From Neoechinorhynchus agilis (lineage: Eukaryota > Animalia > Acanthocephala): DNA of 64,000 bases. Below, piece after piece: positions 3,410 to 59,761 of this stretch. The translations under genes and the position numbers were made by a program. How positions within the stretch are numbered: position 1 is the stretch's first letter; every line of letters starts with the position of its first letter. Below the pieces are notes generated by a model. That model had not been told where the DNA came from. It saw nothing but the letters and a program-made list of their open reading frames with translations, and searched no databases. Location: contig CM121341.1 of NCBI GenBank assembly GCA_051530055.1, positions 4,876,784 through 4,940,783 of the forward strand. Reading direction: 5' to 3'.

Positions 3410-4030
3410 TGATATTGAAAAATTTCGCCGATGTATACAAAAAAATTCACGTAATTAAAGATTCCCAAAATGATGAAAATTTTCACACTGGAAAGTAAGA
3501 CATCAATTTTTCTTAAAGATTAAAATTAAAATTTCGCCGATTTATACAAAAAATCCACGTAATTAAAGATTCCGAAAATGATGAAAATTTTTAGATTGGA
3601 AAGTAAGACATCCATTTTTTCTAAAAGATTAAAATTAAAATTTCGCCGATTTATACAAAAAATCCACGTAATTAAAGATTCCGAAAATGATGAAAATTTT
3701 TAGATTGGAAAGTAAGACATCCATTTTTTCTAAAAAATTAAAATTAAAATTTCGCCGATTTATACAAAAAATCCACGTAATTAAAGATTCCGAAAATGAT
3801 GAAAATTTTTAGATTGGAAAGTAAGACATCCATTTTTTCTAAAAGATTAAAATAAAAATTTCGCCGATTTATACAAAAAATCTACGTAATTAAAGATTCC
3901 CAAAATGATGAAAATTTTTTGACAGGAAAGTAAGACATCCATTTTTCTTCAAGATTAAAATTTCGCCGATGTATAAAAAAATCCACGTAATTAAAGATTC
4001 CTAAAATGACGATCATTTTTGGATTGGAAA
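3410..4030. repeat. Satellite B: ~109-bp tandem repeat, 5-6 copies
   Basis: tttcgccgatttatacaaaaaatccacgtaattaaagattcc repeats with a period of about 109 bp. Confidence 0.95.
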
Positions 4031-4496
4031 GTAAGATATCCATTTCTTCTTATCGATATTTTTATATTTAATATTCCATATTTAGCACATATCTATAATT
4101 TCATCAAAAATATTTCCGCTTCAATGTTGAACCCGAATCATTAATAACAAAATATAGCAGAAGGTCTTTTATACGCGAATTAATTGCGATCGGACACCAT
4201 TTTGATAAGAGATTTTTTGTTTTTGACTAAAAATATCAAAGTTCCGGTAGCAAAATCTTGTTAGAATTACATAATTTGAGCTCTTCTTTTTTGTCGTTAT
4301 TGAAAATAATTTAACAAAATAAATTAAAACGAAGACGATCCAAGATATACATTTTAATTACTTTAGGATATCGGCGAAACGATCAATTGCTCAAAATAAA
4401 TTTATATTTGAGTTGAATATAAACGAAAACGTCTGGAATGCGTGCTCAAATCATTGATTCGAATTTACATAAACGGATCGGTGAAACATCGAAGTT

Positions 4497-4679: not shown

Positions 4680-6131
4680 ACGTCAATAATTCAACCTTAA
4701 AATATGTCAATTATTTTGTTAACGAATAGTAATTTTTTTCATTGCGCCGACGAAATAAAAATCGACATTCTAAATAAGTTTGCATTTTAACAACTCGTTT
4801 TCGCAACTTAAACAAGAAAAGATGTCTTCACTTTTCACTTTATTGTCTCCTTTGTTTTAGTCGCCTGGTTTTAGATTTTAATTAAAGGATTTTCGAAGGT
4901 CAGGTTGTTTTTTCGAGCCTTTATTAGAAAAATACAATGCCGGATTATTATTGACTAATTTATTATAATTCTGTTATCCGTTATCCGTCTAAATATTCGT
5001 AATAAAGTAGTCAATTTAAATCTGAGGTGTTATAACTACCAAAACCAAGTTTTTTTTCTCCGAAGAAAATAAGCCAAAACATCAAATCAAACCCTTTTTG
5101 AATTTGCCATTTACTTCAGCCTTGTCGAGTTCAGCCGTTTTATTGAATGATTGCTGTCTAAAAGTGAACTTCTATGATTATTTCCATTTTATTTCAAATT
5201 AATCGACGAATGTTTCGTAAATTAATAGTTTTGTTTTCTTAGCTTCTGTTGTTGGAAAAAATTATAACGAAATGGACATAATAGATAAAAAAAAATGATT
5301 TACTTTGCAATCTGTGAAGATTTCGCGGAGGCTTTAAATCCTTGGTATGGAGATTTAGGCAGCGAGCATGTATCCGTCAATGGTTGCAAACAATCCCTCT
5401 TGTTTCTCATTTTTAGTTGTGAGAATTCATAACTGTTTAATTTCAGAATCTCGTGAGCTGGTGAACCGAACTCGATTGTCGGCATCTCCCAATCGCCTTT
5501 TTTATGTGCCGTCCGACGAAACAGTAAAGATCGCAGTGCCCAACTGAAACTTAAGATGCGGTCTTGGAACAATCGGGACGATTTAGCCTCGTCCGTCGGT
5601 AATCAGCTGGAAGGCACGAGACGCCGAAGTGAGCGCAATTCTCTAGTCGTGTTCTTAATACTGGGAATGCTCAACTTCGCCGACTCGATGGCCGTATACC
5701 GGATGATTTTCTCAAATGCTCTAAATCATTATATCGTTTCCTTTGGGTTCGAGACATTCCGATCGTTTGGTAATTCGGGGTAGGACTTAGACGAATCACT
5801 TATCATCCGAGGGCATTATCATTGGTGGAACGCTGAATTCGCCCTTTTGACCATCCACGAATTCAGTTTAGTGGTCCAGAGCGATAATGTGAATGTTTTT
5901 CGAATTCTACTTGTTGGAAAAGTTAGTCATGATAATTTTTACTATATAGAAAATACGAGTGGTTTCATGAGTTTCTTTAAGTAAAAATTCTAAACTGCTA
6001 GAATAATTCACGTAATTATTTGAAAAGCTTGTCTACAGCAAATTGGGAAAGGCTTTTACAATTTAGTTACCATGGATTCGCTAAACTAATTCATAAGATC
6101 TAAAAACATTTTAGTGCTTTTAAGTTCGGGC

Positions 6132-8172
6132 ATGGACGAAGAAAATCTTGTCATGAAAAATGAAGCCGAACTCCGGAGCTATTCTGGTGTAGATTCTCAA
6201 ACATTTGAACCGGTCCAATCGAGAGTGATAGTCGTTAACGCGAGTGATCCTACTTTGCCGGAATCAAACTTTGAATGCATAGAGGAAAATCCGTTTTTTG
6301 GCCGAATCCAAGGGCAACTCGACACTGGAGAAGTGAGTACTGATTGTCGTCCCTGAGGCATACTTTGCGAGAATCAGTAGATAAACTTTATTGGTTCTCT
6401 TCGTGCTTTTGGCGAAATATACACCGATCACCTTCTGGGCCAAGATTTACCGGTTGATAAACTGAACGCTGATATTGATGCAGCAATACGCCAAAGCTCA
6501 GATTTTCTTAAACTGCCACTGTATTATCTTTTCAAAGGACTTGGTTTGTTTGATAAACTTAAAGATAAACGAAACGACGTTGAGAGTAACATCACTCAGT
6601 TAATCAGCTTCATTCTTGAACATGGGAACATCTCCGATCTCGATCGAATCATGACAATATGTTCCAGGATTTACGACAACGAACTCATCAGACGTTTATT
6701 ATATCTGATAAAAAAGTTTGAAGTTTCACAGGAACTGGGAGATGCTGCTAAACATACTTTAGATCCAAGTGAACTGGAGCATCTTGATCAAGTTTGTCAA
6801 GTGTTGAACACTTCAAAGCTCAATAGTCTCAAAGAATTGTTTAATCATCTTTATCGAAGTATAACTCCGTACACCTCGCAGTTTTCCATTGACGATCCCA
6901 TTCAAGTAAAGGAATATATAAAACATTCCTTTAAACAGAGACTGGAATCCGACTCTTACTTTGGTCTTCAGCAAACTCTTAATTTCTTTAAACACAAACT
7001 TGGTAATAGTCTTCGAAAAGAGTTCAATCAAATGGAATCCTCTATTCTATTGATGAGAAACCTCAATAATGATGACTACAACGTGTATTTGGATTTACTT
7101 AGGAAACGGCTAATTGCAATGCCCTTAAAAGGACGCATTAAGTTGTTCGATGAGCTTGTCAGTCGAGAGGTAGTTCGACGAAGATTCGGGAAGGAGAATT
7201 TAGAAGCGTCGTTAAGTGCAATGAGTTTCACTTTTGAAATTAAGAAAATTCCTGCTCGAATTTTTGTTGGTTTTTATTGCTAGGTTTGCTTATTTTTCTC
7301 AAAACAATTCAATGTCTGGAGGTTTGGTGCTTTAAGACAATCAATTGAAATACGTTTTAGCCTGCAGTCAAACCCATTGCAGCATAGAGGATCTCTCACG
7401 CATTCTGAAAAATAAAGGAGTTTATATCGTAAAACAGAGATTGAAGCGATCAAAGATCCGCGGAGTTTCTCTAATTTTGAAATGGATGCAGGAACTATCC
7501 GATTATGGAAAATCTAAGACGAAATTAGACATGGATGTATCGGTACTGAAAGGCGTCCTGAAGAGCTGGGTTGAAACAGAAGTAAAGAAACTAGAATTGT
7601 TTGAAATCGACATGATGATAGAAAAGTGCATTTTCTTCGGTTATATAACAGCTAAATCCGTGACATCGAAGCCACACGACGAAATCTTATCCAATGTTAT
7701 TATTAGTATTCTTTGGCAAGATCCGGTGAAGTTGATGAGAGATGCGAATTTAATTCCTCGAGAGGCTGAGCGGATTTTCACTATGTTTAAGGAACCAAAC
7801 GATCAAGAGTTAATTAAAGCAGTCATTGGGTTAATAAAGAAAGAAGCTCAGGACGAGAGAAAATTTGGCATCGTTGTACCGTTTTTAAAACAGTTCTTAC
7901 CAGTACCCAAAGATGTGCATAATTCAAAAAAACGAGCAACTTATCTAAACAAATCTCTAGGTATACTTTCTAGAGATCCAAATATTAAGGTATTAAATGG
8001 TCTAATAGATTCCCTTGCGTTGGAAGTTCCAGACTTTGTGGACGAATGGCTTCAAAGTTCACTGGAATTGAGCTCAGTTCATGGTAGCATTTTTGGAATG
8101 GATGAAACACTTGATGCCGCACCAAAGACATTCTTTGATGGTGAATTAAAAGATTATGGTATAGACGATTAA
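6132..8172 (+). CDS. Multi-exon hypothetical protein, helical and leucine-rich
   Basis: ATG at 6132, a 48-nt GT-AG intron (gtgagt...cagtag) in phase with a long ORF to about 7280, then a 275-aa ORF ending at 8172. The second junction is unresolved and no family was recognised. Confidence 0.65.
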
Positions 8173-8821
8173 GTGTGTTATCTCGAATTTAAATTTTAAA
8201 TTTGTCGACATTTACGGACACATCATTTTTTAGCGCAAAATATCATTTGCTTCAACGTTATAATTTTCGCATTGCACTCATAAAATATTAAATTGTTGAG
8301 ATTTTAAAGTACACACGATAAGAAATTGAATATTTCTACTGTATCTCTAAAGAATGAATATAAATTGTGACCTTGATTGACCTTTTCCATCTTATTTTGA
8401 GTGAAGGAAACAGCATTATTTATCTGCCAATTACTTTAATTTCTAATGAGATTTCGCAGTATTAAATCTCAACGCAATTTAATCGGTTTTAAATGCAAAG
8501 CAAATTTTAGCGTTTCATTGCGTTTTCCCAAAAAAAATTTCTTTTTTTCCTCCATTTCGTCCAATTCTGCAACTATGGTCATAATTGTTCGGCAGCTTCC
8601 TCGATGGCCACGGCATTGCCGCGCTGATTCGCTGCAACAGGAAGCTGATGGAGCGCATGTCTCTACCAGCATTTTTATTGGTCACTCGTGTAATTAAGTT
8701 TGTTTCATCATTTCCGGAATCAATTTCACGATCATTATAAAACTGCTCACGTGACCAAATAATTATCACGGTCTCTGTGCATTAGAAAAAGTCATAGAAA
8801 TCTTAATCTACTCACTTCGCA

Positions 8822-9448
8822 ATGACAGCTAAACTATTGATTTTTATTCTTCTCGCCTCGCTGGACTGTTCTATGACTTTACGAGTTTGGAAAACAGTAC
8901 GAATCAAATCACGAACTGCGGCTTTACCGAGAACATCTGAAAAGTGTTCATCCGATAACAAAGATAATGCTGGTAATTGTATTTTAGCAAATGATCAAGT
9001 ATCTCCGGATTATGTATTTAATCGTTCTTCAATAATCCAAAGAGTGAAAGCAACGATCTTAAATTTTTCCCGCTCAAATGAAACAACGGAACAGTCGTCT
9101 TCGAAAGGAAAAGAAGCCGTAAATCCAAGCAAAATTATGCTTGTAAAATTCTCGAACATAACGTCGGAAAACTACAATTTATCATCATTAACAGCTAATC
9201 AAATTCTTAACTTAACGGAAAGTTCTAAAACAAACGACTCAAAAAGTTTTGTTTTCATATATTTCAAATACAAAATGACTCCTGAGCGAATCAAAGGTTT
9301 CTATGCTGTGCTCGGAGTGGCCTGTTTCCTAATTGTTTGTAATATTATAGCGGTTCCTTTGTGTTTGTATAAGATGAGACTGCAACGCTTGGAAAAAGAA
9401 GAGCAAATAAGGCAGTTTTATATAAGAAAACTCAAACGAGGATATTAA
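8822..9448 (+). CDS. Predicted single-pass type I membrane glycoprotein
   Basis: Hydrophobic signal peptide (MTAKLLIFILLASLDCS), several N-x-S/T sequons, TM segment FYAVLGVACFLIVCNIIAVPLCLY and a basic tail. Confidence 0.7.
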   Translation: MTAKLLIFILLASLDCSMTLRVWKTVRIKSRTAALPRTSEKCSSDNKDNAGNCILANDQVSPDYVFNRSSIIQRVKATILNFSRSNETTEQSSSKGKEAVNPSKIMLVKFSNITSENYNLSSLTANQILNLTESSKTNDSKSFVFIYFKYKMTPERIKGFYAVLGVACFLIVCNIIAVPLCLYKMRLQRLEKEEQIRQFYIRKLKRGY

Positions 9449-9893: not shown

Positions 9894-10397
9894 TTGGCAC
9901 TGGTAAAGAGCTCATTTGTAAAATACCATTAAATTTGTTAATTAACAGGCATCCGTCATAAAGTTCAATTTCTTTTAAGTAATTCGCTGAAAAACAAACT
10001 CGCCTTTTCGACTAAAATTTCTTAGTAGATCCGCATATTATTCGAAAAAACAGAATCTATTGTTTCGAATTATAAATTAATTGTTTGAAATAAAATTAGA
10101 AAGCAATTTTACGAAGAATTTCCTTCAAGAACCTGACGATGATCTTCACCTTGATTGCAACTATCAATCTAAGTAGTTATTTTCATGTCCACGGGACTCC
10201 CGAGTTGTTTAGGATGAAAAGTATATGAGTTCTTTGATATTCGTCCGGCAGTTCAATAGAAATATTCATGGTTATTTGAATAAATCTCAAGTTTTTCTTT
10301 TTTGTCGCTTATTTACTGAAGCTCTTAATACTTTAGGCCCAAGCGCCAAAATTTCCGTTTGACCAATAAGCGAAGAACGCAGAGCTTTTCATTTAAG

Positions 10398-11031
10398 ATG
10401 TCTAAGAAAGCAAAAGTAGAGGAAGAAGTGAATTCTAGCGAATTGATTGACATTGAGTTCGACGCATATCCTCCTTCGGAACGATTTCGTAATGGAATTC
10501 AATTTCTTCTTAAGCAATTCGATTTCATAAAATCCCTTAAGAGCGAAAGTGAGGATGTGGTAGAAAAGCTTACGGATTTAATGATCGAACAGCATCCAAT
10601 TGGTAGTGTGATAATCGAAGCGGACGACGACGATGCAGACCAAAATATCGACGAAGACATTTCAGTATTTGCGCTTTTGACCGTTGTTCCTTTAGAAGAT
10701 ACTCGGCTCGACTCGGTATTTAATCTTTTTTGTGTGAATAAATCAGCACCCAGAAGCGATTGTTGTCTTTTGATAAACCTTCGAGTTCCAGGTCTTCCTG
10801 TGGACTATATGCTGCTTTCTCTTAAAGACCTCCTTTCCGATCTCAATGATAGACCTTTCAAATATTGGATCCTTTTTGAAGATCAATGTGGACTTTTCTG
10901 AAGACAATTTTGAAAACGTTTGCTATGATCGTTGGACTATTAAAGGATCGACATCGCGAGTGATGGTCTTTGAAGCGAGTACAGTTGAGAATCGTCTAGT
11001 GAAGTCTTTGGAAAAGTCTATAAAGAAATGA
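10398..11031 (+). CDS. BCCIP: BCCIP/BCP1 family protein with an apparent +1 frameshift in a T run at about 10873-10877
   Basis: IEFDAYPP..GIQFLLKQ, LTDLMIEQHPIGSVI, acidic stretch, VFALLTVVPL, CLLINLRVPGLP and FKYWIL. The C-terminus (..SRVMVFEA..KSLEKSIKK) is in the overlapping frame. AATAAA follows at about 11061. Confidence 0.8.
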
Positions 11032-12138: not shown

Positions 12139-12609
12139 ATGCATTCCTCTGCAGAAATAGTGAACGGCGCAATCAGTGAATGGGACCACGCAAGTTATGC
12201 GGATTTAATAGAAGCAGCGCTCGAGCACAGTTTGACCGGCAGATTGCGGGTCAATGAAATCTACGAATGGATTCAGGACAATATCCCATATTTCCAACAA
12301 AGAACAGATAGCAAGTCGTGGAAAGGATCGATCAGGAATACACTGTCTTATTGTCAAAGATTCAGGAAAATTCCGGTTCGAGGAAGACCGAGGAAATCGT
12401 TTTGGGCGATCAATGATAACAGGACGAGTGGTCGACTGTGGCGACCAAAAGGACGACAACAAATTGTCGAGGAATCAAGGATTCAGCGTCCTCATCTGAA
12501 TGGAAATGCATCTCAAATACTTCAGCAGGACAATTCAAGAATCTGCGAACAGGAGAACTTAGCGGTTTCCGATCAAGTGATGCCAAACGGCCACCGAGAA
12601 TCAGAGTGA
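12139..12609 (+). CDS. Intronless forkhead (FoxO-like, divergent) protein, paralogue 1
   Basis: WDHASYADLIEAAL..RLRVNEIYEWIQDNIPYF..SWKGSIRNTLS..F.K.P..KSFWAIN matches the forkhead fold. SYADLI and IYEW..NIPYF are most like FoxO. Confidence 0.88.
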   Translation: MHSSAEIVNGAISEWDHASYADLIEAALEHSLTGRLRVNEIYEWIQDNIPYFQQRTDSKSWKGSIRNTLSYCQRFRKIPVRGRPRKSFWAINDNRTSGRLWRPKGRQQIVEESRIQRPHLNGNASQILQQDNSRICEQENLAVSDQVMPNGHRESE

Positions 12610-23537: not shown

Positions 23538-25568
23538 CTGTCGACGGTAGTTCGACAGTAGAAGCGAATAGCAACTTGAATACCGTTTCTCTGAAGCTCC
23601 CCCAGTTTTGGTCACAACAACCACGAATCTGGTTCGTCCAAGCTGAGGCTCAATATTTCAACAGATCAAACAAAATATCACTACGTTATTGCTTCACTTG
23701 ATCAAGAAACTGCTATAAGGATTATCGACATTCTGGAATCGTCGCCAAAGTCAGGAAAGTACGTCCGGCTCAAAGAGCGCTTGCTGGAAACGTATAGTTT
23801 GTCACAGAAAGGGCAAATCGAATCCTTCACACAAGGTCGCATGGAGACGAAAAGCCTTCAGCGTTAATGGATGAGATGCTGGAGTACCTCGAAAGCAACC
23901 TGTCATGTTTCTTATTCCGCGAAATATTTCTTGAGCGCATGCCTGGGGAGATCCGATCTATTCTAGTTCATTCGAAAATAACCGAACCTCGTGAGCTTGC
24001 ACGCGCTGCCGACAACATTTTGCAATCACGGCAACCTTTAGGGTCCTCAATAAAAAAAAAAATTGCGACCAAGCAAATCCCAGTAACAGTATCAGATTTA
24101 TGCTATTACCACCGTAAATTTGGAGATAGAGCAAGGAAATGTAGATCACTTTGTAAGCGATCAGCGGATTTCAAATTGAAAGCCAACCCAAAAAACGAAT
24201 TGACCGATCAATAGTAGAGGCAATGATGATCGGTCCCTCTGTCAACCTAAACGAACGCCAAAGTGGACGACGGTTCCTAGTCGATACTGGTGCCGAAATC
24301 AGCGTCCTTCCAGCCACAACACTCGATAAACAGACCAAACACCCTGGCAGAGCACTTACAGCTGCGAACGGTTCAACAATCCCAAGATTCGGCAACAAGC
24401 TACTGCAGTTGAATTTCGGTAAAACTCAGACGGAATGGATGTTCACTATTGCCGCGGTTAAACACCCTATCCTAGGCGCTGATTTCCTTCGACACTCAGG
24501 TTTACTGGTCGACTTAAGGAATAAGCAGTTGGTTAGTTCAGAAACTTTCGCAATGATACCATTAGCCTCCACTCGTGTATCGATCGAAGCCCTCAGTGTC
24601 GATTTCCTCGGATCGAAGAACGACGAATTTAGTAAAATTCTCGCAGATTTCCCCGATATAACGAGACCTACCTTTTCGGACGTTTCGACCAAACATGCAG
24701 TGGAGCACATTATTGAGACACAAGGACAACCACTCCATGCTAGACCGCGAGGCCTCCCATTCGATAAATTCGCTATTACTAAATCCGAATTCAAAAATAT
24801 GGAGGATCTTGGAATCATTAGACGCTCAAATAGCCAGTGGTCGTCTCCGTTGCATCTCGTACCCAAATCAGGCCGTGGATGGCGTCCTTGTGGCGATTAC
24901 CGCAGGCTAAAGATATCCGATTCCTCGAGTACAAGATTTTTCAGCTAAACTCGCTGGAACAACGATTTTCTCGAAAACAGACCTTGTCCGAGGGTACCAT
25001 CAAATTCGGGTGGCGGAACTGGACATACCAAAAACTGCGATTTTTACGCCTTTTAGCCTTTCTGAATTTCTTCGTATGCCTTTCGGGTTGAAAAATGCTG
25101 CATAAACATTCCAGCGGTTAATGGTAACAGTTTTTCAGGTATGGATTTTACTTTCGTCTACTTAGATGATATACTGATCGCGAGTTCAAATCGATCCGAG
25201 CACAGGAAACACCTACGAACATTGTTCGATCGACTCTCAGAGTACGGCCTCGTTTTGAACCCAGATAAGTGTGAGTTCGGGGTAGAACAGATCGATTTCC
25301 TAGAACACCGGGTGAGTGGACGAGGTGCAGTACAATTGCCAGATAAAGTTAGCGCGATTCGCAGTTTCCCTCCTCCAACATCCACCAAAGCTTTGCAAGG
25401 ATTTGTTGGTATGGTAAATTATTATCATCATTTCATCCCTTCGGCAGTTTCTTCGGATGCGTCCGGTCTACCAAGCGCTTTCTGGTAAAACAAATCTACG
25501 AAGTTTTTCTTGGACAGTTGAAATGGCTTCAGCATTCGAAAAAACTAAAGCCGCTCTAGCAAACGCAA

Positions 25569-25972
25569 TATTCACTACTAAAAGAACTATGAAGCGAAAA
25601 ATTGGTTATTGTAAAGAGGTAGTTTCGACATGATGATGGTCTCCGTTGGCGCCGGCGTTGTTATCACAGCTGTAAATCTAAGACGATTCGGTTGAAAGGT
25701 TTCTCTATGATAGTTCGCTAGTGCAGAATCCTTCTTAGAGAACTTTAGTTTCGTTAACCACCAAGTAAATATTCTCTCTTCCGATTCGAATCGATTATGA
25801 ACCGATGAGCCCAATGATTTGCGTTTCATTAAGAAATTTTCGTTTTCTGGATTATCCGAAACACAATTCATTTGATTATGTCTGTCAGTGTAACTTACGT
25901 TCGTATTGAACTTTTTTAGCTGAAAAAACAATATTCCCCGATCCTTCCATTGCTTTGTGCAAATAAAGACTT
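25569..25972. other. 404-bp foreign insertion between RT and RNase H, flanked by a 12-bp direct repeat
   Basis: TAGCAAACGCAA at 25557-25568 and 25973-25984. Removing the insert and one repeat restores AFEKTKAALANATML. Confidence 0.9.
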
Positions 25973-27644
25973 TAGCAAACGCAACGATGCTTTGACATTC
26001 AGTGACCCACGCACCAATCTCTATCAGTACAGATGTATTCGAGTTTACTATTGGCGTTGTTCTACAGCAGAAAGTGTCCGATTCATGGCAGTTGCTGGCA
26101 TTCTTCAACAAACAACTGCGTAAACCTGAACAACGGTACAGCACCTTCGATCGCGAGCTTCGGGCCATGTATCTCGCTGTCCGACATTTTCGATATTACG
26201 TCGAGGGCCGATCGTTTACGATTTACACTGATCATCGATCTTTAGTTTATGCGATGTCAAAAGTTTCGGATCCTTGGTCCGCCCGTCAACAACGACATTT
26301 GAATTATATATCTGAGTTCACGACCAATATCGAACTCATTAGTGGACAAGAGAACCAAGTTGCCGATGCATTGTCCCGCGTTGATTATTTAGCCAGTATT
26401 TCCGAAGGAATATCGTTTGAAGCGATGACAGAAGATCAAAAGTCTGATCAACACATCCATACATATCGTTCAGCGAATACCTCGCTACAGTTGAAATAAA
26501 TTCCTTTCAATAGCACAGGACAAACTATTTTGTGTGGCATTTCGACTGGCCGTTATAGACCGTTGGTACCATCATCTTGGACGAAACGAGTTTTCGAGGC
26601 TGTACACCAGCTACCCCACCCTGGAATTAAAGCAACCCGAAAATTGGTTAAAACAAAATACGTTTGGCCTGGTTTAACAAAGGATGTTGGTGCCAGGGTT
26701 CAGTCATGCATCGGATGTCAAAAGGCTAAGGTTCAAAGACGCATACGAGCACGGCTTTCTCTTTTCGAACCTCCGCAACGTCGATTTGATCACATCCGTA
26801 AAGATTTAGTAGGTCCGCTACTGGGATCACAAGGTTTCACTCATTTATTAACCGTGGTAGACCGATATACTCGATGGCCCGAGGCAATTTCTTTAAATAA
26901 TACCAACGCCGTAACGTGTGCAAAAGCACTTATCAGCCAATGGATGGCTCGTTTTGGTATTCGTAACGACATCTCCTCCGATCGAGGACCACAGTTCATA
27001 TCAGAGCTGTGGAGAGCAATCGCCGAACATTTATGAATGAAGCTCCACCGCATAACCGCGTATCATCCTCAATCCAATGATATGGTAGAAAGATTCCACA
27101 GGCATCTGAAATCGGCTTTGAAAGCTCGTCTCTGCGGGAACAATTGGATCGACGAACTGCCTTGGATTTTGTTAGGAATTCGCACGGCGCCCAAAGCCGA
27201 CCTTGATTCCTCGGCAGCAGAGCATGAATATGGAAGTGCCATCAACATACCTGCCGATTTTCTTAATTCCTCACTTAGCCGAGTCGATTCTCACACTGAT
27301 CTACAACGGCGACGTAATAAAGTTAAATCTCTTGCTCCCACGCTCGTTGTGAACCGTGTTAAATTGACGACGTTTGTACCAAATACTCTCAGAAGAGCAC
27401 CGCTCGTTTTTGTCAGACGCGGTCAGCATGGGAATCCTACACAGGTGCCGAATACCGGACCTTACAAAGTACTTGATCGCAACGAAAAGTTTTTCATGAT
27501 CGATCTCGGTGGAAAACCAGAGAACGTATCGATAGACCTCCTCAAACAAGCGTATATCGATCCAGCATCACCCGTCATTCTCGCTCAACTTACTAAACGA
27601 GGCAGACCTCGCAAAAAAACGGAAGAACATTCTTGAGGGGGCTA

Positions 27645-27767
27645 TGTAGTGACCATTAACGACGCCACAAGGTTCATGTTAACGTTTTCGGTGTTATGTT
27701 GAATAAAAACCAATTTCTGTGCGGCGAAAGTAGATTTTTCGATCTACTGATGCCAACTACAACAACA
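27645..27767 (+). repeat. 3' LTR of about 123 bp (TG...CA), preceded by a short PPT
   Basis: gaggggg precedes TGTAGT. The last ~48 bp match 23474-23521. Confidence 0.85.
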
Positions 27768-28419
27768 CATTGTTATTTGAATAAATCGCAAGTTTTTCAT
27801 TTTTATCGCTTCACATTTCCATTCAAAGCACTGAGTAATCTCCAGTTTTCCTGGAAAAAATGTGCCTTCGACTGAATAGACCAGCGGCGATCGACGATCA
27901 CCGATTCGCCCGTCTTTCATCTCCTTAGAAAAGCGATTCCTTTTAACTTACTGATAAACTTCGAGTTTCATCGCCATCTCTAATCGATATCGGGCATTTT
28001 CTTTTAATAAAAATCACATTCGTAAAGCGTTAAGAATTTGTATTAAGTACAAAAGAGAAAAATTATTAAGACGTTATTTAATGAAGTTTTAATAGAGTTC
28101 ATGTTTTTCATTGTTCGTAAATGTCTTTTTTCTATGGAATGAAATTTTTCTGTGTTTAGAGAGTAGATTTTTTATTATTTATACTGGTTTTGTACTTTCA
28201 CGATCATTGTAAGAATTTATACAAATTTAACCCACGAGGATTAACTCTCAAAATTTTTTGAAAACTTCTTTGTTCGCAAAAGAAATAAATAGTCCATGGG
28301 TTTTTTTCCATTTTTGCCTTACTTTTCGCCTTTTTTCCTTTCATGATAGAAGTGTCGACAAAACAATTTATTAAAATGCGATGCTCTTAGTATTTGGTTT
28401 AAATAAGAGTCCGTATCCT

Positions 28420-29219
28420 TCAAAAATCTTTACTCAAATGATTGTCGTCAAAATACGGACAAGGATTGTTCCGGAACAAAACGATCTCCTGCGGCATCGT
28501 CTTCTTCAATAAATGAGGCCACTTATATTTGACCAATTTATCAATTTGGTAGTAAGTTCGAAAGAGCAGGTAGTAGAACGGATAGCTTAACCGATCGATA
28601 GTTAATATTACTGGTCTCTGATTCAAATCTACTGAGTAGACTGTGTGATTTCGACATTCTCGGGAAATTATATAGTCCACTGAAAAGCAAACTTCCACGA
28701 GTATTTGAATGCACTGTTTAAGAAATAATCGTAAAGCATAGCCGCACAAATCAAAATTTTTAGACGTATCGGTCACACTTTCCACCACCACCGTAAAATC
28801 CATCTTAAACCTTCGATAAGTTCGAATTGCGACTGTCTTATTTCCGTCTGTCTAGTTGAAATTATAAATGGCACAAATATTACAAGGGCATAAAACATAT
28901 CGTTTTTTCTCTTTTACAATGCACTGGGATAGAACGCTCAGGTAATAGAAACGCATTTAGGACACGTTGACAGATTTTACTTTTATCTACTAAAATACTT
29001 TTGAGAAGCTTCACATTTCAATCCAAAGCTCTGAGCAATCTTAACCTTTCCCTTTAAAAAATTAACCTTCGATTGAATAGATAATCGGCTATCGATGATC
29101 ACCAATCCGTCCGTCTGTGATCCCTCATTGCTTCGTTTGTCAATCTTAGTTTGAGACGCCAAGCGAAACGCTCGACAATATAAGTACGTTTTGTTCCAGC
29201 ATTCATCTTGGTTAAGCAA
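28420..29219 (-). CDS. Hypothetical protein (two ORFs, possibly one gene)
   Basis: 127-aa and 78-aa same-strand ORFs in AT-rich DNA. No motif recognised. Confidence 0.35.
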
Positions 29220-29489
29220 ATTGAAAGTAATTTTGTTTCAGTCCACTGATGGTATAAACAGAAATATTCTAAAAGGTTTTACCTTCTGTATTCATAAGCA
29301 TTAAAGCTCATAAAAATGGATCGTAAAATACTAATTGTTTCGAATTGATTCGAAAGTTGATTTTGTTTTCAAAATGAAATAAAGAATCAAATGCACGATA
29401 CTAAAAAACCGCAAATTGGTGCAAAGCACCACAAAGAATTATCTTTTTAGTATAATAACGTTCTTTTATAAAATTGACGGAAATCTTAA

Positions 29490-31970
29490 AGAATTGAAGC
29501 CAAATTGCCACCTCCACCACCGACTGCACCGATGCCGCCTCGCGATCCCTGACTGAACGTGTTTCTTCGAAGCTTGCGGACGGAGATGTTCGGGGGCTGT
29601 TCGGTTATTGTCATCCTCCGACAGTTTTGCAGAAGGAGACAACGCGACACTGTAAATACTCCAGCAGCGATCGAGAACAGTTTGACCAGAAGATTGCGGG
29701 TCAATGAAATCTACGAATGGATTCAGGAGAATATCCCATATTTCCAACGAAGAACAGATACCAAGTCATGGAAAGGATCAATCAGGAATACACTATCTTA
29801 TTGTCGAAGATTCAGGAAAATTCCTGTTCGAGAAAGACCCAGGAAATCTTTTTGGACGATCAATGATAGCAGGACGAGTGGTCGACTGTGGCGACCAAAA
29901 GGACGACGGCAAATTGTCGAGGAATTAAGGATTCAGCGTCCTCATCTGAATGGAAATGTATCTCAAGTAGTTCAACCGAACAATTCAAGAATCTACGAAC
30001 AGGAGAACATAGCGGTTTCCGATCAAGTGATGGCAAACGGCCACCGAGAATCAGAGTGAGTTTCCGTTGATCACAGAGAAAACCGGGCAGGAACTTCGCC
30101 CAGTCCAACTGGGCTGCTGCACATCCTGCGGGGCAGAAGCTATTGTCCACTCGCTCCGAAACTTTGCTACGAGAAGCTCAGAGCCGTGCGTGATTTTTAA
30201 GTGCGATTTTCGGAACGCCTTTAACTCTCTCAATAGAGAAATCATGTTTTGCGCTATTAGGGATCACGCACCATAAGCCTTCCAGTATTTTCTCAATGCC
30301 TACAAACCGGGACTCCTTTGCTTTTCGAAAACCACCTGATGAATACCAACAAGTATCAAAATAATATCGCGTGATCAAATACTCCTCGCTCGATGGGCAT
30401 CAATATATTTTCATCCCGATCGCGGTGCTCGCTCGATGGGCATCAAGATCCATCATCCACGTCCGAAAGAGGAGTGCAGCAAGGATATCCGCTCGGTCCA
30501 ATCACATTCTCCCTAACAGTAAATCCAATAGCGCATTCTCTCCATTTCAGCTTCAACGCTTGGTACTTGGTTGACGCTACGATCGAAGGTGAACCCTCCT
30601 TTGAACTGCGCGATTTGGAGACGCTGATTAGCGAGACCTCGAGAATGGGCATTGAGCTCAATGCTGGAAAGCTTGAGCTGCTAGTATTAAATATCGAAGA
30701 CGCCGCCAAAGTCAAGGAGCTAATGGATGGGTTCGAGGCCGTAGCTCCAGGCCTGAAACTCGTGACTCCAGAGCAACTCAGCCTCCTTGGTAGTTGCGTC
30801 TTTGATTCAAATGTAAAAGCTGAGATCGGTCATATCATACCGAAACTTTCGTTGCTGTGCGATAGGATGAGCGCTCGCTCGGCTCACGAAGCGTTATTTC
30901 TGCTAACGAACGCATTCTTTATCCCGAAATTGTTATATAAGGTCCGCACAGCAACATTCTTCAAACATAAGGAAGGATTGGCTAAGCACGACAACAAGGT
31001 GAGGGCTTGCCTCGAGCTAATTTTAAATGTCCAGCTCTCAGATGAGACATGGCGACAAGCTTCATTGCCTGTGTCATCTGGGGGATTGGACATTCGGGTG
31101 CTAGTAGAACTTGCCAGCCTTTCTTGGATCGTATGAGGGGAATCAGCCGATAGCGAAAATAATTCTGAGGGGAAAGTTTTGTCTTGACCAAGACTTTGTG
31201 GTGGCAGTTGAAGAATGGTGCCAGAAGACAGGCGCTAACCATACTCCCGTGAATGGCCTCAGACACTCGATCTGGGACAGACCTCTCGTCGCGAGAGCTC
31301 ACAGCTCTCTACTTTCCGGTTCTCGCGATGGGGTAGTTTCGACACGAGAATCGGGAGGCGAGGTTGGAGACTGTTCCTGTGGCATCCGTGGGAACTCTTC
31401 TCATTGATGAGGTAACGAGGATCGCAGTGTCCTTAAGGCTTGGTCTTTGGTTGATGCTTTCGGGCGGCACGGTCTCGTTTGCCGAAAGTCAGGAGGAAGG
31501 TTCTCACGCCATTCTGAAATCAACAGCGTAATTTCTCGGGCGTTGAGAACGGCGAACTTCCCCAACATCTTGGAACCCGCAAATCTTTGTCGACCTGGCG
31601 GAATTTTTGTCTTTCCGTGACTGGAGGGCAAATGCCTCCTCTGGGACGCCAGGTCCCTTGCCGTAAGCAACATTCCCTACTCTCTCGAAATCGCTGGAGG
31701 TGCAGCGGAAGGGAGGAAGGTACGAAAATATAGTTATTTAGCAAGGACCAACTATTTTGTCGTCTTCGGAGTAAAGTATGGAGCGCTTGGCAGCTCGGCA
31801 CTCACTCTGTTCCAAGATCTCTTCAAAAAATTGATAGAAACGACCGGCGACGCACGAGCAAGTTTATTCATGCGACAAAATATCTCGCTCGCAGTACAAC
31901 GAGGCAATGCTGCCAGCGTAGCCGAGGAAGGAGAGAAGCTAGATTTTGCGGACGGTGGTGATTGTACGTT
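29490..31970 (+). mobile_element. Decayed CRE-like (REL-type) non-LTR retrotransposon, interrupted by a forkhead fragment
   Basis: Pre-RT RVSSKLADGDVRG(A)VRLLSS at about 29555-29620. RT LRPVQLG..GAEAIVH, DFRNAFNS, GVQQGYPLGP and WYLVDATI. LPVSSGGL. REL region [25 protein letters not shown] ending RQNISLAVQRGNA. Confidence 0.88.
29586..30059 (+). CDS. Chimeric ORF: retrotransposon-derived N-terminus fused to a 5'-truncated FoxO-like domain (paralogue 3)
   Basis: Fox homology spans 29663-30072 and lacks the SYADLIE start of helix 1. The in-frame ATG at 29586 lies in CRE sequence. Confidence 0.65.
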   Translation: MFGGCSVIVILRQFCRRRQRDTVNTPAAIENSLTRRLRVNEIYEWIQENIPYFQRRTDTKSWKGSIRNTLSYCRRFRKIPVRERPRKSFWTINDSRTSGRLWRPKGRRQIVEELRIQRPHLNGNVSQVVQPNNSRIYEQENIAVSDQVMANGHRESE

Positions 31971-32299: not shown

Positions 32300-33784
32300 A
32301 TGATAAGTAAAATAACGTACAATGAAGCAGCGTTTGGAACTGCTTCAATGGGTGAACTGCTAGCTACTTTGAGGATTAATGTGATTAATGATTACGAATT
32401 CAAAGATGCAAGGATTGTTGCGAAACTCCTTAAAGAGATGATTAAACGCGACATTTCTGAGTGTGATGTGAGTGTGTTCAAGATGCTGCAGTACTTAAAA
32501 GTCTTGGTTGGTAATACGGAAAATAACACAATCCGACGATTACTTCGAGAACTGGTGGAGAAACTCCAAGATGAAAAGGATGGGGTAAAGAGTACTACTA
32601 AGTGGATAATCGGTGCAGACAAGCCAGGGGGCGTGTCGATCAAAACAAGGGCACAGGTGGACGCTGAACGAAAATTGAAAGCGGCTCTAGAAGTTCCGCT
32701 TCCTGATGAGGGCGGAGCTTCAAAATCTAAGAAACGAGCTACAGCTCCTGCGCCAAAACAATATAAAATCGATGAATCAATCAGACAAGCACTCAGGTGT
32801 CCGATTCCTTCCAATAAGGAATCTACAGTGTTCTGTTGTACCAGATCCACAAATGAATTTCCAGTCAACTTTCAACGTAATGCTGTCGAGCAAAAACCAA
32901 TTCCTGTTAATCACAATATGCGAACCATACAGCCCGCTTCGATGGTACCGAACTCTGGATTCGTTCGACCAAATGAGCCGATCAATTCAATGAAGCGATC
33001 GAACTACGAAAATGCTGCACGATGTGGGACTTTGATGGCGAAACGTCCACATATTGAAGCTGGTACCGCATCAAGAATACCGAACATCGAGGTCATTGGT
33101 AATCCCAGAAATGGGTCCGACAGCCATTATAGAAGACAATTCGCTCCCAATATTCAATATCCAGTAGCTCAGACCACTCCTGCATTCACATCGGTAATGG
33201 CTGATAGCCAATTCGTTGAACCGGTACGAATACCAAATCCATCAGGACCGATTTTGACGCGATATCCACCAAGTACGCATGAGCCTGATCGCCAATTACG
33301 ATCTCCTCCACCCGATCGCCATTATCCCAATTCAAAGATCATCGAATCCTCTACGACCTCGACCATTACGAAGAGACCAATAACTGCCGAACTTAGTGGA
33401 AATCTAGATACTGATCAGCACCTTGAACAATCTCTTGCCAAGAATAATCAAGATCCACCAGATCCAGTGACTTTGACTACAGAGCAACTTCAAAGCGATC
33501 CAGCTAAATTAGCCCAAACGTTGAGAAAAATTGCTAGATACCTTTTAGGACGAGAGATTTTCAACAAGAACTCGTATCGATTCCCTCCATATCGGTGGTC
33601 TCGTGGTAACGTTCCGGCCACAGTTCCCACAAACCAATCAGATTTAAGAGCTACGATATCCAATCAAACATCGCAACTAAATACTGACTCAAGTGTCCAG
33701 GAAACAACACAAGAAAAGAAGCGTCCACTACCAAGCGACGATCGTCCTTCTAAAATAGCAAAGCGCGAACCACAGAGTGATTAA
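32300..33784 (+). CDS. 494-aa intronless protein with a possible TFIIS-N/LW-like helical N-terminus and a disordered P/S/T-rich tail
   Basis: KLLKEMIKRDISECDVSVFKMLQYLKVLVGNTENNTIRRLLRELVEKLQ follows the spacing of TFIIS-N helices. The ORF itself is robust, but the domain call is tentative. Confidence 0.6.
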   Translation: MISKITYNEAAFGTASMGELLATLRINVINDYEFKDARIVAKLLKEMIKRDISECDVSVFKMLQYLKVLVGNTENNTIRRLLRELVEKLQDEKDGVKSTTKWIIGADKPGGVSIKTRAQVDAERKLKAALEVPLPDEGGASKSKKRATAPAPKQYKIDESIRQALRCPIPSNKESTVFCCTRSTNEFPVNFQRNAVEQKPIPVNHNMRTIQPASMVPNSGFVRPNEPINSMKRSNYENAARCGTLMAKRPHIEAGTASRIPNIEVIGNPRNGSDSHYRRQFAPNIQYPVAQTTPAFTSVMADSQFVEPVRIPNPSGPILTRYPPSTHEPDRQLRSPPPDRHYPNSKIIESSTTSTITKRPITAELSGNLDTDQHLEQSLAKNNQDPPDPVTLTTEQLQSDPAKLAQTLRKIARYLLGREIFNKNSYRFPPYRWSRGNVPATVPTNQSDLRATISNQTSQLNTDSSVQETTQEKKRPLPSDDRPSKIAKREPQSD

Positions 33785-57010: not shown

Positions 57011-57280
57011 ATTGAAAGTAATTTTGTTTCAGTCCACTGATGGTATAAACAGAAATATTCTAAAAGGTTTTACCTTCTGTATTCATAAGCATTAAAGCTC
57101 ATAAAAATGGATCGTAAAATACTAATTGTTTCGAATTGATTCGAAAGTTGATTTTGTTTTCAAAATGAAATAAAGAATCAAATGCACGATACTAAAAAAC
57201 CGCAAATTGGTGCAAAGCACCACAAAGAATTATCTTTTTAGTATAATAACGTTCTTTTATAAAATTGACGGAAATCTTAA

Positions 57281-59761
57281 AGAATTGAAGCCAAATTGCC
57301 ACCTCCACCACCGACTGCACCGATGCCGCCTCGCGATCCCTGACTGAACGTGTTTCTTCGAAGCTTGCGGACGGAGATGTTCGGGGGCTGTTCGGTTATT
57401 GTCATCCTCCGACAGTTTTGCAGAAGGAGACAACGCGACACTGTAAATACTCCAGCAGCGATCGAGAACAGTTTGACCAGAAGATTGCGGGTCAATGAAA
57501 TCTACGAATGGATTCAGGAGAATATCCCATATTTCCAACGAAGAACAGATACCAAGTCATGGAAAGGATCAATCAGGAATACACTATCTTATTGTCGAAG
57601 ATTCAGGAAAATTCCTGTTCGAGAAAGACCCAGGAAATCTTTTTGGACGATCAATGATAGCAGGACGAGTGGTCGACTGTGGCGACCAAAAGGACGACGG
57701 CAAATTGTCGAGGAATTAAGGATTCAGCGTCCTCATCTGAATGGAAATGTATCTCAAGTAGTTCAACCGAACAATTCAAGAATCTACGAACAGGAGAACA
57801 TAGCGGTTTCCGATCAAGTGATGGCAAACGGCCACCGAGAATCAGAGTGAGTTTCCGTTGATCACAGAGAAAACCGGGCAGGAACTTCGCCCAGTCCAAC
57901 TGGGCTGCTGCACATCCTGCGGGGCAGAAGCTATTGTCCACTCGCTCCGAAACTTTGCTACGAGAAGCTCAGAGCCGTGCGTGATTTTTAAGTGCGATTT
58001 TCGGAACGCCTTTAACTCTCTCAATAGAGAAATCATGTTTTGCGCTATTAGGGATCACGCACCATAAGCCTTCCAGTATTTTCTCAATGCCTACAAACCG
58101 GGACTCCTTTGCTTTTCGAAAACCACCTGATGAATACCAACAAGTATCAAAATAATATCGCGTGATCAAATACTCCTCGCTCGATGGGCATCAATATATT
58201 TTCATCCCGATCGCGGTGCTCGCTCGATGGGCATCAAGATCCATCATCCACGTCCGAAAGAGGAGTGCAGCAAGGATATCCGCTCGGTCCAATCACATTC
58301 TCCCTAACAGTAAATCCAATAGCGCATTCTCTCCATTTCAGCTTCAACGCTTGGTACTTGGTTGACGCTACGATCGAAGGTGAACCCTCCTTTGAACTGC
58401 GCGATTTGGAGACGCTGATTAGCGAGACCTCGAGAATGGGCATTGAGCTCAATGCTGGAAAGCTTGAGCTGCTAGTATTAAATATCGAAGACGCCGCCAA
58501 AGTCAAGGAGCTAATGGATGGGTTCGAGGCCGTAGCTCCAGGCCTGAAACTCGTGACTCCAGAGCAACTCAGCCTCCTTGGTAGTTGCGTCTTTGATTCA
58601 AATGTAAAAGCTGAGATCGGTCATATCATACCGAAACTTTCGTTGCTGTGCGATAGGATGAGCGCTCGCTCGGCTCACGAAGCGTTATTTCTGCTAACGA
58701 ACGCATTCTTTATCCCGAAATTGTTATATAAGGTCCGCACAGCAACATTCTTCAAACATAAGGAAGGATTGGCTAAGCACGACAACAAGGTGAGGGCTTG
58801 CCTCGAGCTAATTTTAAATGTCCAGCTCTCAGATGAGACATGGCGACAAGCTTCATTGCCTGTGTCATCTGGGGGATTGGACATTCGGGTGCTAGTAGAA
58901 CTTGCCAGCCTTTCTTGGATCGTATGAGGGGAATCAGCCGATAGCGAAAATAATTCTGAGGGGAAAGTTTTGTCTTGACCAAGACTTTGTGGTGGCAGTT
59001 GAAGAATGGTGCCAGAAGACAGGCGCTAACCATACTCCCGTGAATGGCCTCAGACACTCGATCTGGGACAGACCTCTCGTCGCGAGAGCTCACAGCTCTC
59101 TACTTTCCGGTTCTCGCGATGGGGTAGTTTCGACACGAGAATCGGGAGGCGAGGTTGGAGACTGTTCCTGTGGCATCCGTGGGAACTCTTCTCATTGATG
59201 AGGTAACGAGGATCGCAGTGTCCTTAAGGCTTGGTCTTTGGTTGATGCTTTCGGGCGGCACGGTCTCGTTTGCCGAAAGTCAGGAGGAAGGTTCTCACGC
59301 CATTCTGAAATCAACAGCGTAATTTCTCGGGCGTTGAGAACGGCGAACTTCCCCAACATCTTGGAACCCGCAAATCTTTGTCGACCTGGCGGAATTTTTG
59401 TCTTTCCGTGACTGGAGGGCAAATGCCTCCTCTGGGACGCCAGGTCCCTTGCCGTAAGCAACATTCCCTACTCTCTCGAAATCGCTGGAGGTGCAGCGGA
59501 AGGGAGGAAGGTACGAAAATATAGTTATTTAGCAAGGACCAACTATTTTGTCGTCTTCGGAGTAAAGTATGGAGCGCTTGGCAGCTCGGCACTCACTCTG
59601 TTCCAAGATCTCTTCAAAAAATTGATAGAAACGACCGGCGACGCACGAGCAAGTTTATTCATGCGACAAAATATCTCGCTCGCAGTACAACGAGGCAATG
59701 CTGCCAGCGTAGCCGAGGAAGGAGAGAAGCTAGATTTTGCGGACGGTGGTGATTGTACGTT
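57281..59761 (+). mobile_element. CRE-like retrotransposon with forkhead insert (57454-57863), unit 2 copy
   Basis: Copy of 29490-31970. Confidence 0.88.

Follow-up and report, generated by a model that had tools for sequence, protein, structure and literature searches.

A FoxO-like forkhead segment within a decayed CRE-type retrotransposon of Neoechinorhynchus agilis: probable origin by deletions and recombination in a repeated gene cluster

A decayed CRE/R2-type non-LTR retrotransposon in the genome of the fish parasite Neoechinorhynchus agilis was found to carry a segment of a FoxO-like forkhead (Fox) gene in place of its N-terminal reverse transcriptase (RT) motifs. We consider it probable, though by no means assured, that this chimera arose within an array of Fox-CRE units, through illegitimate recombination or a series of deletions. 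The analyzed stretch of 64,000 nucleotides (the window) starts at approximately base 4,876,784 of chromosome CM121341.1 in the assembly GCA_051530055.1, and the sequence compared beyond it amounted to ~230 kb of the N. agilis genome.

Anatomy of the CRE-like element

The element occupies positions 29484-31966 on the plus strand, as do all its parts described below. Its 5' end was retained, since the 5' UTR and the inferred start ATG at 29532 (29484-29537) were homologous to positions 13871-13924 of the paralogous locus L003, which there lead into an open CRE N-terminal ORF (MPSPHF...LKRIPKGAR) matching residues 93-221 of the relatives; the 5' boundary would lie at ~29484, where the flank duplication ends in L003. 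At 29537-29542 follows the junction of a 730-bp internal deletion, by which most of the N-terminal ORF was lost (L003 13925-14654 had no counterpart in the window) and which was also found in the loci L004 and L009. A simple 5' truncation of the element was ruled out, because the 5' end and the inferred ATG precede this internal deletion. The CRE-like pre-RT segment (RVSSKLADGDVRG/AVRLLSSSDSFAEGDNATL; 29542-29662) was 91.6% identical to L003 14655-14773 and aligned to the pre-RT motif of P0001-P0009, the CRE/SLACS-like relatives used in the RT alignment. The pre-RT peptide that the earlier note had placed ahead of the Fox sequence was present at ~29560-29620 (RVSSKLADGDVRG/AVRLLSS), readable only via a 1-nt frameshift within a run of G; the segment also carries a TAA stop at 29655, and the frameshift was common to the unreplaced paralog L003b.

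Downstream of the Fox segment, the CRE-like RT restarts just before motif 2a (LRPVQLG...AEAIVHS...KCDFRNAFNS; 30073-30340, by alignment to the relatives), the resumption previously read at LITEKTGQELRPVQLG being traceable in the same alignment from 30067. Positions 30081-30113 were 97% identical to L003 15137-15169, and the resumed RT showed zero differences from the L004 copy as far as 30195 and ~10% divergence beyond. A gap in the L004 alignment marked a 120-bp filler (30341-30460), which includes a 19-bp stutter repeat and 51 bp (30377-30427) of another CRE-like family, 94% identical to the C-terminal coding region of family L003a (L003 6115-6165). The remaining part (30461-31966) comprises the decayed RT (GVQQGYPLGP, YLVD), a thumb, a CCHC motif, a degenerate restriction-like endonuclease region and the element 3' end, as set by comparison with both 13148-13263 and L003 9267-9325. 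Its tblastn match to P0001 residues 465-985 required a frame change, and its DNA identity to L004, which retains an intact 544-aa ORF, was only 80.9%.

RT motifs 2a-7 aligned to P0001-P0009, whereas motifs 0-2 were gone from the window copy and kept in L003b. As the earlier note had observed, GSxGxDG and RPIAVG..RRL were missing between the two CRE pieces, leaving a gap of ~130 aligned residues; the paralog still encodes these motifs at L003 14776-15134 (GSGLGLDGLRPQHLKD and GGIRPIAVSS). Against an RVT_1 cut-off of 29.6 bits, the window copy scored 19.7 bits and the L004 copy 31.1 bits. In the L004 ORF, CCHC is followed by RRPDG...WD...AEGRKVRKY in alignment with the relatives, whereas RPDG was lost from the window copy by deletion; nothing APE-like appeared in the alignment of the relatives. 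With RT motifs 0-2 gone, YxDD changed to YLVD and the endonuclease motif deleted, the window element is predicted to be unable to transpose.

Placement of the family and its insertion sites

The closest named relative of the CRE family was a barnacle 'SLACS' protein (30% identity), and the family profile matched solved R2 proteins at 3.7e-16 and LINE-1 ORF2 at 3e-6; the putative placement among CRE elements is thus one by best matches. A phmmer search of the PDB with the L004 ORF gave no match, R2 being reached with the family profile only. Like CRE1, CRE2, SLACS, CZAR and R2, the family apparently has one ORF, in which a zinc-finger-like region at the N-terminus and a central RT are followed by CCHC and a restriction-like endonuclease (RPDG...D...E.K), which is intact in the L004 copy; unlike those elements, the copy in the window has been rearranged and is dead. 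Trypanosomatid CRE elements target spliced-leader genes, whereas the N. agilis family showed no sign of such targeting, its three independent 3' ends lying in unrelated AT-rich flanks; in the window, Rfam detected 28S fragments only, and an SL RNA gene was not among its matches. Flanks on the 3' side proved unrelated between the copies in the window, L004 and L006 and the remnants, so that repeated insertion at one site is unlikely, and independent site-specific insertions at paralogous sites were ruled out by the differing 3' flanks together with the shared frameshift. With the stitched CRE translation as query, zero N. agilis proteins were among the matches, presumably as a result of repeat masking ahead of annotation (PMC12690905).

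The inserted Fox segment and its junctions

The Fox-homologous DNA reported earlier at 29663-30072 (plus strand) proved exact by identity to the neighboring genes FoxA and FoxB and by BLAST and Pfam: it comprises codons 26-156, the stop codon and 13 nt downstream of a FoxO-like gene. The 410-bp segment was 92.9% identical to FoxA (12213-12622) and 91.2% to FoxB (22688-23097). Against every sampled Fox gene, BLAST gave 90-93.4% with constant end points, the closest intact gene standing at 93.4%. The segment grouped with a Fox lineage 2.1 Mb off (P0023; nearest relatives at 2.72-2.76 Mb) and not with the neighboring FoxB, which, being among the sampled Fox genes most distant from it, was ruled out as the donor. 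The segment carries a G→E substitution in the otherwise invariant wing-1 motif VRGRPRK. Its dN/dS values (0.42-0.76) were similar to those of Fox-Fox pairs (0.38-1.0) and thus did not separate a gene from a pseudogene.

The 40-mers across the left (CRE-Fox) and right (Fox-CRE) junctions were CGCGACACTGTAAATACTCCAGCAGCGATCGAGAACAGTT and AGAGTGAGTTTCCGTTGATCACAGAGAAAACCGGGCAGGA, respectively. At the left breakpoint, the unreplaced paralog continues with TCGGTCAAAGCAC instead of agcagc, giving a microhomology of 0 nt, while the right junction offered at most 2-3 ambiguous nt; the microhomologies agcagc and gatc proposed earlier for the two ends were therefore not borne out. A replaced RT segment of similar size had also been surmised, and this held roughly, as 355-359 bp (~357 bp) of CRE were lost versus 410 bp of Fox gained. 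The Fox segment terminates 13 nt past the stop codon, with the nearest AATAAA ~110 nt further on, and neither an mRNA 3' end nor an A tail was found at its right edge.

The duplicated Fox cluster

The cluster contains at least 14 short FoxO-like genes, most units of which are followed by copies or remnants of the CRE family; the repeated units lie in both orientations across ~330 kb, and identity within one element is a mosaic of 81-100%. In the window, the intact 156-aa gene FoxA (12139-12609, plus strand) precedes a 116-bp 3'-end remnant of this CRE family (13148-13263), and the equally intact 156-aa FoxB (22614-23084, plus strand) heads the unit of the chimera. Between FoxB and the chimera lies a 4.3-kb integrase-bearing retroelement (23474-27768, plus strand; Pfam rve and Integrase_H2C2), which was present in L004 at 98.7-99.2% identity and absent from the empty L003 site near 10889, and which marks the duplicated block. 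An identical twin of the whole chimera (57275-59757, plus strand) belongs to the second copy of a 27,791-bp duplication, whose copies were 99.99% identical (two mismatches between 10884-36209 and 38675-64000, none of them within the chimera). Kilobase-scale deletions have fused parts of units, as at 13148, where the spacer abuts the final 116 bp of CRE, and hybrid elements occur at block ends; the 730-bp deletion is another nearby case.

Three full chimeras were found, two in the 27.8-kb direct duplication of the window and one in L004, ~160 kb off. All three have common upstream flanks, including one retroelement insertion, and have thus been spread by segmental duplication. Within the sampled sequence, the suggestion of the earlier note that the element may be the vehicle that spread the Fox copies was refuted: the chimeras share flanks, and intact Fox genes have, unlike the chimera, 25 codons at the N-terminus and common upstream DNA of at least 370 bp, at least 12 sampled Fox genes sitting outside any CRE with their own upstream DNA and N-termini. 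Moreover, the chimera lacks RT motifs 0-2, and the window copy has a degenerate endonuclease region. That Fox was carried along in read-through transcripts of CRE, as a 5' transduction, was likewise rejected, since FoxA-type units share DNA past the CRE 3' end; the 19% difference between the 3' parts of L004 and the window also counts against it.

Paralogous loci and the origin of the chimera

In L003 14655-15169, the left CRE piece, ~357 bp encoding RT motifs 0-2 and the right piece form one uninterrupted stretch, which established that the two pieces flanking the Fox segment are collinear. The upstream flank (window 28400-29537) was 89.5% identical to L003 12739-13924 (the shared flank ranging over 89.5-92%), and the 5' end and the G-run frameshift were common to the window copy and L003b, with the CRE parts 91.6% identical. 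Because flank, 5' end and frameshift are shared with an unreplaced paralog, the host was most likely an already damaged, integrated copy before Fox arrived, and it was probably a dead chromosomal copy by then, to judge from its sequence. The upstream flank and 5' end were common to the window, L003b, L004 and L009, and no new insertion site of the chimera was found in the sequence sampled.

The search for further CRE-Fox junctions suggested in the earlier note succeeded in part, in that both junctions were found in L004 and the left one alone in L009, with no dispersed copies in the sampled sequence. At L004 (~5.066 Mb, about 160 kb from the window), both junctions were exact, and FoxB, the retroelement insertion and the flank were 96.5-99.2% identical; among the sequence sampled, the right junction was confined to the window (twice) and L004. 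L009 12202-12789 was 96.1% identical to window 29485-30072, with an identical left junction, the 730-bp deletion and the six substitutions that separate the window Fox segment from the sampled intact Fox genes; beyond this, the DNA downstream of its Fox segment is that of an ordinary Fox gene, which shows the two junctions to be separable.

These recurrences bear directly on an assembly artefact. The assembly was built from long error-prone reads with Flye and Hi-C (PMC12690905), by which misjoins could arise in a region so rich in repeats; the 99.99% identity of the 27.8-kb duplication and the position of the frameshift within a homopolymer would fit such an origin. Yet L004, at 1-19% divergence, has both junctions, and L009, at 3.9%, has the left one; as artefacts gather no substitutions, we regard a misjoin as highly improbable.

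From the anatomy, the paralogs, the common upstream flanks and the separability of the junctions, we infer the following order of events and deletion mechanism. The CRE-Fox-CRE order would have formed at the DNA level, once the element had integrated and started decaying, most simply by two consecutive deletions or illegitimate joins between adjacent units. The first would have joined the 5' part of a CRE copy (to 29662) onto codon 26 of the next Fox gene, a state that L009 may preserve; the second would have joined Fox, 13 nt beyond its stop codon, onto the next CRE copy just before motif 2a (30073). The block would then have been segmentally duplicated, once to ~5.066 Mb (L004), where the 3' part may since have been replaced by a younger CRE copy, and once as the 27.8-kb direct duplication of the window. 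That no donor exceeds 93.4% identity fits the truncated Fox gene itself as the donor. Against this two-deletion path, the CRE breakpoints in two copies must fall ~357 bp apart and in the correct order, for which we estimate a chance of about one in four, and no extant locus in the sequence sampled has a second CRE downstream of an L009-type Fox. The affinity of the inserted Fox to the P0023 lineage would be explained equally well by a donor in trans, and L009 could be either the precursor or a later recombinant of the complete chimera with an ordinary Fox gene.

The latter possibility belongs to a one-step patch repair, to which we assign a minor share of the likelihood: a break or deletion in the dead CRE would have been mended with 410 bp of Fox from elsewhere, by ectopic templated synthesis or fragment capture, and L009 would have recombined later. 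The similar lengths of the lost (355-359 bp) and gained (410 bp) DNA and the location of the insert's nearest relatives at 2.72-2.76 Mb, not adjacent, agree with it. On the other hand, to yield L009 a Fox partner from outside the sampled sequence would be required, together with a crossover late in the 410 bp (with which the L009 markers beyond 29849 are compatible), donor identity is nowhere above 93.4%, and templated insertions at end joining are mostly far shorter than 410 bp. In its favor again, the filler at 30341-30460 of the same element, ectopic and in sense orientation, includes a stutter repeat and was copied from another CRE family; scars of this kind are left by error-prone repair (reviewed in PMC7407515).

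Capture at the RNA level, in which a CRE-type RT would have switched templates twice, from CRE RNA to Fox mRNA and then to CRE RNA again, with direct integration or cDNA-mediated conversion, appears improbable. Every piece is sense-oriented, including the third-party CRE RNA-like piece at 30377-30427, the Fox sequence holds only transcribed parts, a younger subfamily with the intact 544-aa ORF speaks for recent family activity, and double template jumps of LINE reverse transcriptases are on record (PMC2104539). Nevertheless, the one-step capture by template switching or microhomology repair put forward in the earlier note accorded poorly with the damaged host copy, whose flank, 5' end and frameshift are those of the unreplaced paralog and hence not of a new insertion, and with the weak microhomology, as two internal-to-internal switches without homology would be required. 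Nor does it account readily for a Fox piece that ends 13 nt after the stop without a natural 3' end or A tail, or for the left junction occurring without the right in L009, and a retrotransposed chimera copy was not found in the sampled sequence.

Like the U6-L1 and MGL/WEIRD/Mg-SINE chimeras (PMC2104539), the present one has sense pieces of different transcripts head to tail, with the LINE 3' end last. Those template-switch chimeras are new insertions with target-site duplications, the acceptor RNA being copied from its own 3' end (PMC2104539), whereas the N. agilis chimera lies at the same locus as the unreplaced paralog, its Fox piece is internal at both ends, and one of its junctions occurs elsewhere without the other. 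Repeated units, mosaic identity and deletions fusing unit parts are shared with chimeric pseudogenes and fusion ORFs of segmental duplications; unlike these, the N. agilis fusion mimics a neat domain swap in a transposon and yields an annotated ORF.

The chimeric ORF

The ATG at 29586 indeed opens an ORF to 30059 (plus strand; 157 aa), as the earlier note had stated, and its product is the deposited protein P0024; exact-protein look-ups returned nothing for the GTG-started form or for FoxA. The forkhead genes and gene identifiers are unmentioned in the N. agilis genome paper (PMC12690905). P0024 consists of 26 residues of out-of-frame CRE, followed by a forkhead domain without the first half of helix 1; Fox and CRE are read in different frames, so that RT and Fox are not fused. 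Against Pfam Forkhead (PF00250, gathering score 27 bits), the chimeric ORF scored 61.6 bits (E = 7.9e-17) and FoxA 70.8 bits, with matches beginning at profile positions 13 and 5 of 88, respectively. Instead of EWDHASYADLIE of helix 1, the chimeric ORF has unrelated residues ending in proline, and by the match start and the missing residues its forkhead domain falls short of the full fold with helix 1; for P0024, AF2 gave a model with a mean pLDDT of 44, too low to judge folding. The Fox family best matched 2mbf and the DNA-binding domains of FOXO1/3/4 (1e-19 to 1e-13), including W..SYADLI of helix 1. Unlike FoxO, the family proteins have just 156 aa, a near-bare domain plus tail, and the chimeric version further departs from FoxO by the loss in helix 1 and the G→E change in wing 1.

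The ORF was identical across all three full chimera copies, and across the 697 bp of its region the window and L004 did not differ at all, with flanks ~1% different, which could reflect either constraint or recent gene conversion; in its L009 relative, the frame is cut short by a stop at the PYF motif. That the Fox sequence came from RNA into a resident copy by RT template switching or cDNA repair and, in addition, that the 157-aa ORF is an expressed, remodelled FoxO-like gene strikes us as quite doubtful. Judged from its sequence, the ORF appears to be an accidental reading of out-of-frame CRE into the forkhead domain, and P0024, deposited as two identical gene models, is probably a pseudogene fusion.

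Implications

If the capture reading were true, a LINE of the restriction-endonuclease type would have taken up and spread a transcription-factor domain, a rare event. We favor instead an ordinary course, in which a gene cluster both young and rich in repeats would have undergone deletions and recombination whose product mimics a domain swap. For annotation, the lesson is that the N. agilis gene set holds a 'forkhead' protein that is probably such a fusion. The more interesting object is the cluster of short FoxO-like genes itself, a lineage-specific expansion in a parasite otherwise noted for gene loss.

Structure and sequence context of the chimera

The Fox-homologous DNA within the CRE-like retrotransposon copy at 29484-31966 was shown by self-BLAST to extend exactly over 29663-30072 (410 bp), as the earlier note had described, and to be 92.9% identical to FoxA (12139-12609) and 91.2% to FoxB (22614-23084), both intact forkhead genes of 156 aa. 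It runs from codon 26 through codon 156 and the stop codon to 13 bases beyond. The stitched translation of the CRE flanks found reverse transcriptase (RT) proteins with 30-36% identity, including one named after SLACS. Solved R2 proteins matched the CRE family profile at 3.7e-16, far more strongly than LINE-1 ORF2 did. Alignment with RT relatives confirmed that the left piece carries the conserved pre-RT motif and that the expected RT motifs are absent: the right piece begins just before motif 2a (LRPVQLG), and approximately 130 residues, including GSxGxDG and RPIAVG..RRL, are gone between the pieces. The window copy also has a 120-bp filler, which includes 51 bp (30377-30427) of a different CRE-like family. 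This second family, unrelated at the DNA level, has a near-full-length copy on the minus strand of one paralogous unit (5896-9039 of the sampled locus L003), and the site of that insertion is empty in the window (13430/13432).

Self-BLAST further identified a 27,791-bp direct duplication in the window (10884-36209 = 38675-64000) with two adjacent mismatches only (10889-10890), which may have arisen very recently or else during assembly. Every feature of the chimera is doubled by it, and an identical twin lies at 57275-59757. Besides FoxA and FoxB, the first duplication copy contains an integrase-bearing retroelement (23474-27768) with a gag zinc knuckle and terminal repeats of only ~53 bp (23474-25 vs 27720-72). 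At 13826-17734 on the minus strand (also L003 16299-20471), an R2-like non-LTR element (RVT_1 5e-14, N-terminal zinc-finger ORF) directly adjoins a 28S rRNA fragment (positions 665-2342 of the Rfam LSU model); both lie outside any rDNA array and were copied together with the Fox units (93-94% identity). A 132-aa ORF (18486-18884; paralogs at L003 698-1099 and L011 16348-16746) has a signal-peptide-like start and a Pfam match to YscW (9.6e-11), a domain of bacterial lipoprotein type, here on an animal chromosome; it could reflect horizontal acquisition or a family wider than annotated. Satellite-like arrays with periods of 73/150 bp and 103-109 bp occur at two places in the window (1180-2959, 3419-4050, 19772-20491), and an annotated 494-aa ORF without a Pfam match (32300-33784) lies just 3' of the chimera.

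An unreplaced paralog and a separable junction

The comparison loci were DNA around other Fox genes on the same chromosome (~230 kb sampled). In L003 (record ~4.769 Mb), one contiguous CRE fragment holds, in order, the left piece (14655-14773, 91.6% identical to that of the window), ~357 bp encoding GSGLGLDGLRPQHLKD...GGIRPIAVSS, and the start of the right piece (15137-15169, 97% identical). The two CRE pieces are thus collinear, a point fixed beforehand as a test of the chimera, and the supposed swap of similar size held, 355-359 bp of CRE being replaced by 410 bp of Fox. The proposed microhomologies did not: with L003 as the reference, CRE past the left breakpoint reads TCGGTCAAAGCAC and shares none with AGCAGCG, and the right junction allows no more than 2-3 ambiguous bases.

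L003 and the window copy have in common the flank upstream of the element (window 28400-29537; 89.5-92% identical), the element 5' end with its inferred start ATG (window 29532), and the same G-run frameshift; the window copy has an extra 730-bp internal deletion. Since the 3' ends of the CRE family are independent and lie in unrelated flanks, the same target is unlikely to have been hit repeatedly; judged from these sequences, the most likely origin of the two copies is one old insertion, which was duplicated together with its Fox neighbour. If so, the Fox segment most likely arrived in a CRE copy already integrated and damaged.

Another locus, L009 (record ~4.959 Mb), matches window 29485-30072 at 96.1% (L009 12202-12789), with the left junction and the 730-bp deletion both as in the window. 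It carries all six of the six substitutions marking the window Fox segment off from the intact Fox genes sampled. Past the point where the window returns from Fox to CRE, L009 has instead ordinary Fox downstream sequence and spacer; its Fox is interrupted by a premature stop at the PYF motif, and the normal stop codon is gone. With only the left junction present in L009, the two junctions need not have arisen together.

These observations conflict with the capture by template switching or microhomology repair that the earlier note had proposed. Although RNA-level template switching has been documented for other LINEs (PMC2104539) and would fit the sense orientation of the Fox segment, the insertion site and frameshift are shared with the unreplaced paralog, the Fox piece has internal ends and lacks an A tail, and the L009 state stands against it. 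A one-step repair patch in the CRE copy, from which L009 was made later by recombination, is a less probable alternative: CRE loss and Fox gain are of similar size, the nearest relatives of the Fox segment are 2.1 Mb off, and the same element has a second ectopic filler, but an unsampled partner and a late crossover would be required.

The simplest history would instead start with a deletion in an array of Fox-spacer-CRE units, fusing the CRE 5' part to codon 26 of the next Fox (the L009 state). Following the separation of the lineages (3.9% divergence), Fox would have been joined, 13 bases past its stop codon, to the next CRE copy ahead of motif 2a by a second deletion. The retroelement insertion would have come next, then duplication of the block to a further locus, L004 (~1% divergence), and lastly the 27.8-kb duplication. 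A comparable deletion is found nearby, in FoxA-type units, where spacer runs at 13148 straight into the final 116 bp of CRE. This path would also account for the finding that no intact Fox sampled comes closer than 93.4% to the inserted segment, since the donor would be the truncated gene itself. We give this specific two-deletion path roughly even odds.

Spread of the chimera

The search for other CRE-Fox junctions, covering the window and the ~230 kb sampled, found four instances of the left junction and three of the right. Both are unchanged in L004 (record ~5.066 Mb, opposite orientation), whose upstream block also matches the window (FoxB 96.5%, the same retroelement insertion 98.7-99.2%, and flank), indicating segmental duplication, not transposition. 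L003 and L009 lack this retroelement, which the units of the window and of L004 carry. An assembly error, which would make the chimera an artifact, is unlikely, as the junctions recur in copies diverged since.

From 30196 on, L004 and the window are only about 81-90% identical. An ORF of 544 aa (GVQQGDPLGP, YLDD, CCHC, RPDG) is intact in L004, whereas its window counterpart is decayed. This 3' stretch of L004 can be assigned to a younger CRE subfamily, other copies of which lie in L006 (95.7% identity) and L007. L004 is thus a hybrid in which a young 3' part follows an old 5' part, and it probably formed through recombination or by new cDNA annealing to the old copy. The copies of the younger subfamily (L004 16847-18481, L006 14769-15696, L007 5916-6032) are 94-96% identical, which together with the intact ORF suggests recent activity. 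Two long CRE-like copies in L008 showed ~41-46% tblastn identity to the related CRE-like protein P0001.

Coding potential of the chimeric ORF

The continuous ORF from the ATG at 29586 into Fox (29586-30059) is real and equals the deposited 157-aa protein P0024, with a forkhead domain (Pfam, 61.6 bits). Its first 26 residues, however, are out-of-frame CRE; because the Fox and CRE frames differ, the ORF is not an RT-Fox fusion. The pre-RT peptide can be read through only with a 1-nt frameshift. Forkhead similarity in the ORF begins only at position 13 of the profile, which means that half of helix 1 (EWDHASYADLIE) is lost, and a glutamate replaces the otherwise invariant glycine of VRGRPRK. For this ORF, dN/dS gave no discrimination and the structure model was too weak for use. 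N. agilis gene models were produced by BRAKER2 on the RepeatMasked assembly with RNA-seq hints (PMC12690905); no gene is called at the identical ORF copy in L004. Around the ORF, the window and L004 show 0 differences over 697 bp, with ~1% in the flanks, which is mild sequence evidence for either recent gene conversion or constraint. The chimeric ORF is probably incidental.

Relation to the Fox family

At least 14 short (~156 aa) FoxO-like forkhead genes, a lineage-specific family, lie in both orientations over 2.72-5.08 Mb of CM121341.1 (window, L003-L011), often beside BCCIP-like fragments (e.g., window 10359-10901), with pairwise dN/dS of 0.4-1.0. Common to the intact genes, but missing from the chimera, are 25 N-terminal codons and a stretch of upstream DNA of at least 370 bp. 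The intact genes occur in several unit types, most with a CRE copy or remnant downstream, which is a passenger. As the chimera also has no working RT, the idea that it was the vehicle spreading the Fox copies is refuted within the sampled sequence.

The feature is therefore real and was accurately described; its origin by capture gives way to what is likely mundane rearrangement, and we consider it quite probable that the chimera arose at the DNA level after integration and spread by segmental duplication. It is likely a chimeric pseudogene of a known kind, produced by rearrangement in segmental duplications.
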